Below, piece after piece: positions 4,369 through 61,408 of a stretch of DNA of 64,000 nucleotides. The translations under genes were made by a program, and so were the position numbers. Within the stretch, counting starts at the first letter, position 1. Each line of letters begins with the position of its first letter. The DNA lies in the sequence record MT161459.1. One strand, written 5' to 3'. The notes beneath the pieces were generated by a model. It was not told where the DNA came from. It made no database searches and saw nothing but the letters and a program-made list of their open reading frames with translations.

Positions 4369-4650
4369 ATGGACTTACGAACTGTATGTTTGATAGTCGC
4401 AATAATTGTGCTGCTTGTATATCTCATCGTCGATCGAGAAAAAGAAGACCCAGACGACAATGAAGCGCTGGTACAGGCAGCTAGGTTGAAACACAAGTAC
4501 CGAGAAGCAATCTCGCCGTTGATCCTGAATGGTATGAGGCGAGACAAAAAGATCAAGGGCCGCAGTATGATGAGGACCGAAGTGTGTCCAATATATGCAG
4601 CACCTTGTACCAACCACACGACCAAAAGTAGGAAGAAGAAACGCAAATGA
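4369..4650 (+). CDS. Hypothetical membrane protein
   Basis: N-terminal TM segment, basic C-terminus, SD GAGG, ATGA overlap with rnlB. Confidence 0.65.
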   Translation: MDLRTVCLIVAIIVLLVYLIVDREKEDPDDNEALVQAARLKHKYREAISPLILNGMRRDKKIKGRSMMRTEVCPIYAAPCTNHTTKSRKKKRK

Positions 4651-5636
4651 TCTTCAAAAGCTATCCTGAAATGGAAAACCACAGCAAGAGTCGCATCATC
4701 AACGCAGTGATCGAGCAAGGCCACGGTGCAGCAGATGTAGTTTGGTGCGCGCGCGAAAAGATTCACGGTACCAACTTCTCGCTCTGGTACAACGGCGTAG
4801 ATGACGTCCGAGCTGCAAGACGCACTGACTTCCTGGAGTTCGCTGACAAGTTCTACGACTTCACCAACATCGAACGTCGATACCAGTTGTGCGTCCAAGC
4901 TCTGTATCTGCGGTTGGGCCTGACTACTGAGGTGATGGCGGTGTACGGCGAGTATGCTGGGATTATGTCGAGTGGGAAGTGGATCCAAACCGGTATCGAA
5001 TATGGCCCTCAAGACTTCTACGCGTTCGACGTCATGGTAGATGGAGTTCCCATCGATGATGATGTCATGGAGTCTGCTTGCCTGGATTGTGGCATGAAGA
5101 CAGCTCCGCTGCTGAAAGTTGGGACCTTCAAAGAAGTGATGGGAGTTCCGAATGATCTGCAGTCCGTGGTCATGACCAAGAACGAAACTGGCACTTTCGA
5201 GATCGTCAAGGGCACCGACAACATCGCCGAAGGTTACGTTGCTAAGCCGCGCGTAGGTCGCCGGTTCTGGAACGGAGCTCGGGTAGCGATCAAGTGCAAG
5301 AACGAGAAGTGGTCCGAGACTGCTAAGGGCAAGGGCGTCAAGATTGAGGTCAAAGACATCTCCGATAAAGATGCGTCCATTCTGGCTATGCTGGGCGACT
5401 ACATCACCGAGAATCGTTTGAAGAACGTGCTCTCCAAGATCGGCGTACCGGAGACCAAGGAGTTCGGCAAGGTCATGGGCATGCTGTCCCAAGACATCAT
5501 CAAAGACTATGAGTCCGACACCGAGACTTTGGTCAAAGATGCTGACGAGCCAAGTCGAGTATGTCGGATGATGAATACTGCAGTGGGTAACTTCATTCGT
5601 CCTCTGTGGGTTGACATCTGCGACGGTGCATGGTAA
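4647..5636 (+). CDS. rnlB: RNA ligase 2
   Basis: Motif I REKIHGTNFS, YGEYAG, FYAFDV, motif IV EGYV, motif V AIKCKNEKWSE, and a C-terminal domain with NVLSKIG. Confidence 0.95.
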   Translation: MIFKSYPEMENHSKSRIINAVIEQGHGAADVVWCAREKIHGTNFSLWYNGVDDVRAARRTDFLEFADKFYDFTNIERRYQLCVQALYLRLGLTTEVMAVYGEYAGIMSSGKWIQTGIEYGPQDFYAFDVMVDGVPIDDDVMESACLDCGMKTAPLLKVGTFKEVMGVPNDLQSVVMTKNETGTFEIVKGTDNIAEGYVAKPRVGRRFWNGARVAIKCKNEKWSETAKGKGVKIEVKDISDKDASILAMLGDYITENRLKNVLSKIGVPETKEFGKVMGMLSQDIIKDYESDTETLVKDADEPSRVCRMMNTAVGNFIRPLWVDICDGAW

Positions 5637-57336: not shown

Positions 57337-57810
57337 ATGAAAACGTTCTCGCAGTTTTGTGAGAACAAGCAAGGCGGATCATACGTTGCTGTCAAGTACG
57401 GCAACGTATGCTCAAATGAGATAGTCGCGACGTGCAGAGCTCTCGGGATTCCGAATCCGGTTGTGCCGGAAGATCTGCACACTACAATCATCTATTCGAG
57501 AACGGAGTTGACAAAGTACAAGGTTCCGCGTAACGTCAATCACGTCGTATCTGGCGAATTGACTCCAGCGGTATTCGAGACCTCTAAGGGGAAGCGAGTA
57601 CTTGTGTTGAAGTTGAACGATGAGTGGTTTGGACAACGTCACAGAGAAATCATGGATGCTAATAAACGAGCGACCTATGACTTCCCAGACTTTGTTCCTC
57701 ACATCACTCTCAGCTACGATCTTGGCGACTTTCCAGTTCCGACCAAGTTTGTTCTCGAAGAACCACTAACGGTGGTACGAGAGTATCACGAGGAGTTAGA
57801 TTGTGACTAA
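57337..57810 (+). CDS. acb1: gp57B / Acb1 anti-CBASS 2H phosphoesterase
   Basis: Two HxT motifs (DLHTTIIYS, PHITLSYD), G.YVAVK, and position after 57A. Confidence 0.9.
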   Translation: MKTFSQFCENKQGGSYVAVKYGNVCSNEIVATCRALGIPNPVVPEDLHTTIIYSRTELTKYKVPRNVNHVVSGELTPAVFETSKGKRVLVLKLNDEWFGQRHREIMDANKRATYDFPDFVPHITLSYDLGDFPVPTKFVLEEPLTVVREYHEELDCD

Positions 57811-57901: not shown

Positions 57902-57922
57902 GGCGCTCGATGAGCGCCTTTT
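57902..57922 (+). terminator. Terminator-like hairpin
   Basis: GGCGCTC-GAT-GAGCGCC-TTTT. Confidence 0.65.
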
Positions 57923-57936
57923 AAGAAGTATTTGTT

Positions 57937-58038
57937 CGGGGGTTCGTACAACCGGAGAGTACTGGGGCCTTCTCATGGTTATTAAATAGTGACCATGAGA
58001 AGCCCTCAATCCCAGTTCGAGTCTGGGACTCTCGACCA
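57937..58038 (+). tRNA. Atypical tRNA-Arg(UCU)-like gene with a 26-nt insertion in the anticodon loop
   Basis: Acceptor CGGGGGT/ACTCTCG-A-CCA, D arm GTAC-AACCGGAGA-GTAC, anticodon stem GGGGC/GCCCT around a 33-nt loop, T arm CCCAG-TTCGAGT-CTGGG. Confidence 0.8.
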
Positions 58039-58127
58039 AATACTTCTTGTGTTCAAACGGACTTCCCAGTACGCAACCTAAGTGGTTAACAACGAAGGGC
58101 TGGTTTGCAACGCAAGAAATAAACATT

Positions 58128-61323: not shown

Positions 61324-61408
61324 GGAGGAGTGGCTCAAAGGTTGAGCGGCGGACCGTTAATCCGCGAGCGTATGCTCTATGTAGGTTCGAGTCCTACCTC
61401 CTCCGCCA
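61324..61408 (+). tRNA. tRNA-Asn(GTT) with a long variable arm
   Basis: GGAGGAG/CTCCTCC-G-CCA, GCGGA-CCGTTAA-TCCGC, variable arm GAGC-GTAT-GCTC. Confidence 0.85.

Follow-up and report, generated by a model that had tools for sequence, protein, structure and literature searches.

To our knowledge, the tRNA introns of bacteria and their phages are all self-splicing group I ribozymes, and no description of another kind was found in the literature. Group I introns have a length of about 200 nt or more, with a core of helices P3-P9 and a G-binding site, and are present in bacterial tRNA-Leu, tRNA-fMet, tRNA-Ile and tRNA-Arg(CCU) and in protein-coding genes of T4. Protein-spliced tRNA introns are regarded as an archaeal and eukaryotic trait. 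They are located at position 37/38, are marked by two 3-nt bulges 4 bp apart, and are cut to give ends that bear a 2',3'-cyclic phosphate and a 5'-OH; we know of no splicing endonuclease in bacteria.

The helical intervening sequences of 23S rRNA are excised by RNase III at a double-stranded stem, and the resulting pieces are not rejoined (PMC8708148). In phage T4, Pnk and Rnl1 rejoin tRNA that has been cut in the anticodon loop, and the T4-type Rnl1 is a ligase specialised for tRNA breaks at this place (PMC3014915).

The gene described here belongs to Aeromonas phage Ahp1_CNU-2021 (MT161459, Straboviridae), which has a genome of 218 kb. The right-hand 64 kb of this genome constitute the window, the whole stretch of DNA that was analysed, and window positions equal MT161459 record positions minus 154317. 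A tRNA-Arg(UCU) gene, which is unannotated in the GenBank record, is located 3' of gp57B and a short ORF and is the first gene in a tRNA cluster spanning the end of the linear record. The genome-wide tRNA survey, performed with ARAGORN only, identified 15 tRNAs in the window, 12 at the start of the record and none elsewhere (27 in total). ARAGORN detected no other tRNA-Arg, either in the window or in the remainder of the 218-kb genome, and the original prediction that this tRNA-Arg is the only one in the window thus holds for the entire phage. The AGA codon accounts for 14.5% of the Arg codons in the long ORFs of Ahp1 (7.3 per 1000 codons). The locus is organised as follows.

57902 to 57922, plus strand: hairpin GGCGCTC-GAT-GAGCGCC, rich in GC and with a trailing TTTT, located 5' of the tRNA-Arg gene and 3' of the small ORF that comes after gp57B/Acb1 (sequence).
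57923 to 57934, plus strand: 5' arm of the flanking helix, AAGAAGTATTTG, pairing with 58037 to 58048 (minimum-free-energy fold).
57937 to 57973, plus strand: 5' exon, with the acceptor 5' strand, the D arm (A20 at 57956), the anticodon stem 5' strand and C32 to U36.
57974 to 57999, plus strand: intervening sequence of 26 nt, which forms a hairpin (stem 10 bp, loop 4 nt) and whose 3'-terminal AG is paired with C35 and U36.
58000 to 58035, plus strand: 3' exon, with A37 and A38, the anticodon stem 3' strand, CAAT, the T arm, the acceptor 3' strand and A73.
57937 to 57943 with 58028 to 58034, plus strand: acceptor stem CGGGGGT/ACTCTCG, 7 bp including two G-U pairs.
57946 to 57949 with 57959 to 57962, plus strand: D stem GTAC/GTAC, closing the D loop AACCGGAGA with G18, G19 and A20.
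57964 to 57968 with 58002 to 58006, plus strand: anticodon stem GGGGC/GCCCT, 5 bp (sequence).
57969 to 57973 and 58000 to 58001, plus strand: anticodon-loop bases C32, U33, U34, C35 and U36, and A37 and A38, on either side of the insert at 57974 to 57999.
Variable loop, plus strand: CAAT, 4 nt (sequence).
58011 to 58027, plus strand: T arm CCCAG-TTCGAGT-CTGGG, perfectly paired.
58035 and 58036 to 58038, plus strand: discriminator A73 and CCA (sequence).
58036 to 58048, plus strand: CCA and the 3' arm of the flanking helix, CAAATACTTCTT; the CCA (58036 to 58038) overlaps the arm (58037 to 58048).

Apart from the 26 nt inserted in the anticodon loop, the sequence at 57937-58038 contains every part of a tRNA-Arg(UCU) cloverleaf, including an acceptor stem of 7 bp, a 4-bp D stem accompanied by G18 and G19, a 5-bp anticodon stem and a GTTCRA T loop. 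The anticodon loop encoded by Ahp1 comprises 33 nt, and the 7-nt loop CUUCUAA (C-U-UCU-A-A) is found only in the orthologue from phage phiAS5 or in the insert-bearing alleles after joining of the flanks. Both exons were delimited on the basis of the sequence, stem covariation and the ARAGORN identification of tRNA-Arg(tct) in the joined flanks. In Ahp1, the insert is placed between U36 and A37, and the 14 extra pairs (57970-57983 with 57988-58001, tip AAAT) belong to the minimum-free-energy fold. The 126-nt unit that includes the flanking helix has a folding energy of -62.7 kcal/mol, compared with -33.3 +/- 3.9 for shuffled sequences (z = -7.6, 0 of 200 as good). The cloverleaf, 33-nt loop, inserted hairpin and flanking helix had all been described at the outset, and the sequence and the minimum-free-energy fold bear out this description in every detail. 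The Ahp1 gene was missed both by the default mode of ARAGORN and by the Rfam tRNA model.

The arginine identity elements for ArgRS of E. coli are A20, C35, U36 or G36, and A73 or G73. Among all alleles of the phage gene, A20, C35 and U36 are invariant and position 73 is occupied by A or G; each allele thus carries these elements.

Like the group I introns of bacterial tRNAs, the insert interrupts the anticodon loop and has a sporadic distribution. However, a group I intron is ruled out by the size of 26-28 nt, the plain hairpin structure and the absence of an Rfam intron match. A search of Rfam at a permissive threshold revealed no match to curated RNA families, including bacterial Y RNA-like and other tRNA mimics, once a match to rli56 of Listeria, which at 28.8 bits stays below the gathering score of 47, and matches to microRNA hairpins had been rejected as long-stem artefacts.

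With the archaeal and eukaryal tRNA introns the insert shares its short length, its non-catalytic nature, its location in the anticodon loop and its pairing with the anticodon, as well as the participation of an endonuclease and a ligase that is proposed here. Unlike them, it is located at 36/37 within a continuous helix, and its predicted ends are of the opposite type. A bulge-helix-bulge intron is ruled out by this position and by the continuity of the helix across both junctions in all alleles; an intron placed at 37/38 would also make position 37 a C or U, which it is not in phiAS5.

The intervening sequences in 23S rRNA of Salmonella, Yersinia, Campylobacter and alpha-proteobacteria likewise form an extra helix on a loop of a stable RNA, occur sporadically among close relatives, and possess neither ribozyme nor coding capacity. 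They are 100-200 nt long and their pieces are left apart, whereas the phage insert comprises 26-28 nt in an anticodon loop and decoding by the tRNA would require resealing. Cutting by RNase III is established for 23S rRNA; for the phage insert we infer it. In the response of T4 to PrrC, a tRNA broken in the anticodon loop is also held together by its stems, and Rnl1 seals 3'-OH and 5'-phosphate ends; orthologues of Rnl1 and Pnkp are encoded by Ahp1. However, the break repaired in T4 is damage inflicted on host tRNA-Lys by a host defence and needs healing, whereas the break proposed here would be programmed, would occur in a phage tRNA and would need no healing.

Inserts of 26-28 nt at the identical site are present in seven other Aeromonas T4-like phages and in one metagenome contig, and the locus in these relatives lies between gp57B and a tRNA-Leu(CAA)/tRNA-Leu(UAA) pair. 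The insert-bearing relatives are AsFcp_4, phiWae14, PX29, Aeh1 and Ah1. In the PX29 group, the only difference of AsFcp_2 is the base that precedes the acceptor stem, and AsFcp_1 is 99% identical (blastn); Ah1 is identical to avDM12-TAAL, and the metagenome contig is nearly identical to Ahp1, being its one such relative in the metagenome scan. In phage phiAS5, the orthologous gene lies between the same flanks but lacks the insert; it has the loop CUUCUAA and is recognised by ARAGORN as tRNA-Arg(tct). Since no bases are shared across either junction, the boundaries of the insert, after U36 and before A37, are unambiguous. The removal of 57974-57999, originally deduced from Ahp1 as restoring CUUCUAA, corresponds to the insertion point revealed by the insert-free phiAS5 gene, and joining of the flanks yields tRNA-Arg(tct) by ARAGORN in 8 of 8 insert alleles. 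The exons of phiAS5 and PX29 differ at 7 positions. This closeness, together with the presence of the insert in all other lineages, including the most distant one, Ahp1, makes a precise loss of the insert in phiAS5 appear more likely than repeated gains.

Covariation was analysed in an alignment of nine distinct alleles, on which the cloverleaf, the insert helix and the flanking helix were imposed. Standard pairs occupy 96.4% of the cells, compared with 38-48% after the partners have been shifted by 1-3 columns. Changes on both sides have affected 23 of the 45 pairs, counts that do not represent independent events because the nine alleles come from few lineages only, and the observed covariation was reached by 0 of 500 column shuffles. 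Such changes are found in the acceptor stem (3 of 7 pairs), the D stem (3 of 4), the anticodon stem (3 of 5), the T stem (2 of 4), the flanking helix (5 of 10) and the insert helix (6 of 10). The check proposed with the original prediction, namely a search for orthologues and for compensatory changes in the insert helix, thus gave a positive answer on both points. U33-U36 form four pairs, two of them with A37-A38 and two with the 3' AG of the insert, and these are invariant among tRNA bodies that differ strongly. The constancy of CUUCU/AA in an otherwise covarying helix matches what selection on the future anticodon loop would predict.

The inserts in the relatives and the compensatory changes in every stem exclude both a simple pseudogene and an assembly artefact. 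On these comparative grounds, the 26-28-nt insert is an intervening sequence in a live tRNA gene. The insert-free phiAS5 gene, the agreement of the insertion site with that deduced from Ahp1, the covariation of the insert helix around invariant loop bases and the status of the gene as the sole tRNA-Arg favour the view that it is a small intron, one of the possibilities raised at the outset, and its removal from the transcript by some route is, on balance, probable.

It could also be that only the DNA matters, the insert being a selfish palindrome or a guard against a homing endonuclease that targets tRNA genes, and the interrupted tRNA being non-functional baggage. Exchange of the tRNA cassette between lineages inside conserved flanks is consistent with this explanation: AsFcp_4 (genus Angelvirus) carries an Ahp1-like exon and insert allele inside flanks identical to those of PX29, which indicates that the cassette moves by recombination. 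However, in a dead gene the many compensatory changes found across at least four genera would not have left intact all four tRNA stems, the helix of the insert and the bases for Arg identity, and the conserved G.U pairs indicate selection on the RNA of this strand. Moreover, a benefit at the DNA level would be compatible with removal at the RNA level and therefore presents no full rival. We consider the purely DNA-level explanation very improbable. The strand asymmetry of the folding energy of the anticodon arm gave mixed results.

In the two members of one genus, AsFcp_4 (locus L002, 2989-3115) and PX29 (locus L007, 3008-3132), the exchange has occurred exactly between the arms of the flanking helix. 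In phiWae14, a 246-aa ORF on the minus strand (locus L003, 3109-3849), absent from the locus of the other phages, lies directly 3' of tRNA-Arg. It matches PHROG endonuclease families (6.5e-13) and has no Pfam match, and probably encodes a free-standing homing-type endonuclease residing in the tRNA cluster, which recalls segB in the tRNA cluster of T4 (PMC2330249).

In every allele, U33 is paired with A38, U34 with A37, C35 with the last base of the insert and U36 with the penultimate one. The anticodon helix is extended to about 20 bp (5 + 14-15) with the junctions near its middle, and the anticodon is buried in 8 of 8 insert alleles. The phiAS5 allele and the pairing register place the junctions 2 bp apart across the helix, in the 3'-protruding sense, likewise in 8 of 8. 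Between the 5' junction and the loop, the stem spans 10-11 positions in all alleles despite their differing sequences, mismatches and loops, the latter being AAAU, UUCG, UACG, UAAC, CAAC or UUUGAU. Invariant within the insert are a U.G plus a U-A pair adjoining the loop, and the G that meets A at the 3' junction. Two pairs from the 3' junction, the helix contains a bulged C (C31 or C32); mismatches are found beside the 5' junction in Aeh1 and Ah1 and in the upper stem in PX29 and phiWae14.

The late-promoter core TAAATA, noticed earlier at the tip of the insert, is confined to Ahp1, the nearest relative having TGAATA. A late promoter in the loop was rejected, the loops UUCG, UACG, UAAC and CAAC of the other phages being unrelated to TAAATA.

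The hallmark of RNase III is the production of 2-nt 3' overhangs with 3'-OH and 5'-phosphate ends, and these are the ends that ATP-dependent RNA ligases require. The junctions of the insert are situated within a double helix of about two turns. Owing to their 2-bp offset, cuts at these sites would give the freed hairpin as well as the remaining tRNA a 2-nt 3' overhang, which is the product geometry of RNase III as deduced from the pairing register; this stagger did not figure in the original prediction. Taken alone, the offset is moderate evidence, since it follows from the pairing register and its probability a priori is perhaps 1 in 3 to 5. The genes for RNA processing enzymes of interest here are located as follows.

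4647 to 5636 of the window, plus strand: rnlB, RNA ligase 2 (Pfam RNA_ligase and T4_Rnl2_C).
125437 to 126606 of the record, outside the window: rnlA, encoding Rnl1 (Pfam T4_Rnl1_C, 2.6e-33; RNA_lig_T4_1, 5.3e-17).
141543 to 142460 of the record, outside the window: Pnkp (HAD_PNKP, 4.4e-50, and AAA_33).

The enzymatic steps of the following pathway are all ones that we infer from the sequence. In the transcript, the 3' AG of the insert would pair with C35-U36 and U33-U34 with A38-A37, so that the anticodon stem would be prolonged into a single helix of about 20 bp with a small loop at its tip. Host RNase III would bind this two-turn helix and cut both strands in its middle, after U36 and before A37. 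The hairpin would be released with a 2-nt 3' overhang, leaving the tRNA nicked in the anticodon loop with a 3'-OH at U36 and a 5'-phosphate at A37, and phage RNA ligase 1 would seal U36 to A37 directly, making end healing unnecessary. The flanking helix of about 20 bp would represent a second site of RNase III type, at which the precursor is freed, and the ends of the tRNA would be finished by RNase P, 3' trimming and the CCA-adding enzyme of the phage. Mismatches beside the 5' junction or in the upper stem of some alleles could reduce or redirect the cleavage by RNase III, the tRNA body may hinder its binding on one side, and 3' exonucleases could trim the overhang ahead of ligation. Excision by RNase III and resealing by Rnl1 to an ordinary 76-nt tRNA-Arg(UCU) is put forward tentatively, as a plausible course of events whose chances fall somewhat below even.

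Ahp1 encodes both Rnl1, with its tRNA-specific C-terminal domain, and Pnkp, that is, the genes of a sealing pathway. The rnlA gene is present in all insert-bearing phages and is nearly universal in T4-like phages, including the insert-free phiAS5; its presence is thus permissive for ligation rather than diagnostic. Cleavage and ligation of a small intron had been envisaged with Rnl2 as the ligase. The Pfam matches at 4647-5636 confirm that the phage encodes Rnl2, but Rnl1 fits the predicted ends better. The gp57B gene (window 57337-57810), labelled 'RNA ligase' in the RefSeq records of related phages, has a weak match to the 2'-5' RNA ligase superfamily and matches Pfam Acb1 with 2.1e-32. It was rejected as the splicing ligase, since Acb1 is an anti-CBASS phosphodiesterase that is universal in T4-like phages. 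The six-frame translation of the phage showed no RNase III signature with a PROSITE-type pattern, so that the nuclease would be that of the host.

Alternatively, the insert may truly be excised by another route and the ends then healed by Pnkp and sealed by Rnl1, with the chemistry of tRNA repair in T4, or joined directly by host RtcB. All of the comparative evidence for an excised intron fits this scheme equally, the full heal-and-seal set of Pnkp and Rnl1 is encoded by Ahp1, and the invariant U.G and U-A near the loop and the G and A at the 3' junction could mark the site of a dedicated nuclease, for which the many phage ORFs with no assigned function leave room. However, no candidate nuclease was found, a bulge-helix-bulge motif suited to an enzyme of the splicing-endonuclease type is lacking, and the conserved stem length of 10-11 bp and the 2-bp stagger are left unexplained. 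Excision by such a route appears rather doubtful.

The flanking helix comprises 12 bp in Ahp1 and lengthens the acceptor stem to about 20 bp. In the other phages its arms are GAACACATTG/CAATGTGTT, a different sequence that still pairs, with both sides changed in 5 of 10 column pairs; the helix has thus been kept although its sequence was replaced wholesale between Ahp1 and the other phages. Such a helix is absent from all 27 ordinary tRNAs of Ahp1. All 27 of these encode CCA, which the tRNA-Arg alleles outside Ahp1 do not (ACAATG or GCAATG). The restriction of the flanking helix to tRNA-Arg and the lack of an encoded CCA in the relatives suggest a separate maturation route, which possibly consists of release by RNase III followed by RNase P, trimming and CCA addition. 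A CCA-adding enzyme is encoded by Ahp1 (MT161459 127581-128723), although its 27 ordinary tRNA genes already carry CCA.

The hairpin at 57902-57922 upstream of the flanking helix was not called by a terminator scan, since it is followed by 4 T only. At the corresponding place, the near-identical metagenome contig (L006, 7920-7945) has a different hairpin of similar form with a T-run, and the other phages have yet another. Across Ahp1, this contig and the other phages, a hairpin with a T-run upstream of tRNA-Arg is retained as a structure but not as a sequence.

The unusual arms may instead mean that the insert is retained and that the RNA of about 100 nt is a tRNA-shaped molecule with no anticodon loop. 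Such a molecule could serve as a decoy for anticodon nucleases or other tRNA-binding defences, as a sponge for ArgRS or modification enzymes, or as a processing or regulatory element heading the tRNA cluster. This would accord with the long arm that buries the anticodon in 8 of 8 alleles, with acceptor and anticodon arms that are both about 20 bp, unlike those of any ordinary Ahp1 tRNA, with the CCA that most alleles do not encode, and with the presence in the same genomes of a second, unrelated long tRNA-like gene that has its own flanking helix. However, the phiAS5 orthologue is a plain tRNA-Arg(UCU), the Arg identity bases are kept, and the bases of the future loop never change within a helix that otherwise covaries, which decoding predicts and mere pairing does not. 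Furthermore, retention would leave the phage with 27 other tRNAs and no tRNA-Arg. Retention of the insert is therefore judged unlikely, as is a decoy role for the interrupted tRNA-Arg. The suggestions in the original prediction of an anticodon-less mimic or decoy, or of a molecule binding ArgRS or EF-Tu, lose ground in view of the phiAS5 orthologue and the invariant loop bases.

The second long tRNA-like gene (MT161459 11731-11844, outside the window; locus L012, 2731-2843) is about 113 nt long and is annotated as 'tRNA-OTHER pseudo'. It scores 31.2 bits with the Rfam tRNA model, a 51-nt block replaces 11 nt of its anticodon arm, and its flanking helix is GATAATAC/GTATTATT. The internal block, GUAAAAU..CAUyCUGUnAAGrAUG..CUGCAAU..CGCCUGUUAAGCC, is conserved in Aeromonas T4-like phages and is also present in Synechococcus phages BUCT-ZZ01, B3 and B23; the acceptor and D stems of the gene covary. 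Another 'tRNA-OTHER' pseudogene call, at MT161459 4980-5054, has a good 7-bp acceptor stem and the anticodon arm GCTTGG-CCGAAA-CCAAGC with a loop of 6 or 8 nt. The tRNA-Asn(GUU) at 61324-61408 of the window is 85 nt long and has a long variable arm forming a hairpin (GAGC-GTAT-GCTC), which is unusual for tRNA-Asn.

Further searches returned few related sequences. Beyond chance matches, scans of IMG/VR yielded only phiAS5, PX29 and one unrelated insert-bearing tRNA-Arg-like gene. In the scan of GTDB genomes, the matches listed were chance matches only, and 0 of 108 candidates were called as tRNA after joining of the flanks. A blastn search with the insert-free allele found many ordinary phage tRNA-Arg genes and no additional split ones. 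The unrelated gene, on the minus strand of IMGVR_UViG_3300004694_000026 (L033, 7755-7875), resembles tRNA-Arg(UCU) and has a 31-nt insert that is also at 36/37. This insert contains a 15-nt tandem repeat and forms no long continuous helix, and the gene is not called by ARAGORN.

In GenBank, the interrupted gene of PX29 is annotated as a 'tRNA-Lys' in two pieces and that of Aeh1 as a 'tRNA-Glu (UUC)' of 105 nt; the published tRNA list of Aeh1 has Glu-UUC and no Arg-UCU (Nolan et al. 2006, PMC1524935). The anticodons assigned to the insert alleles by the intron mode of ARAGORN are inconsistent (Leu gag, aag or caa; Glu ctc) and were discarded, as this mode allows no intron placement at 36/37. 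The interrupted structure explains why the gene has been missed or mis-typed in phage annotations, as Lys, Glu, Leu or nothing. A search of the full-text literature found no published description of a hairpin intron at 36/37 of tRNA-Arg, and the reviews of T4-related genomes, their mobile elements and their RNA biology do not mention one.

The sole tRNA-Arg of a phage clade is thus interrupted by a short, non-catalytic and evolutionarily maintained intron in genomes that encode the matching ligase, and the proposal for its removal is cheaply testable. That the phage performs a protein-catalysed tRNA splicing out of two housekeeping activities, excision by host RNase III and resealing by phage RNA ligase 1, is a possibility that we advance with some reserve. 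If true, it would give the bacterial world its first tRNA intron that is not self-splicing, and would constitute a third way of splicing tRNA. It would also provide the T4-type Rnl1 with a constitutive substrate beyond damage repair, and would bear on the old question of what purpose T4-type RNA ligases have besides countering PrrC.
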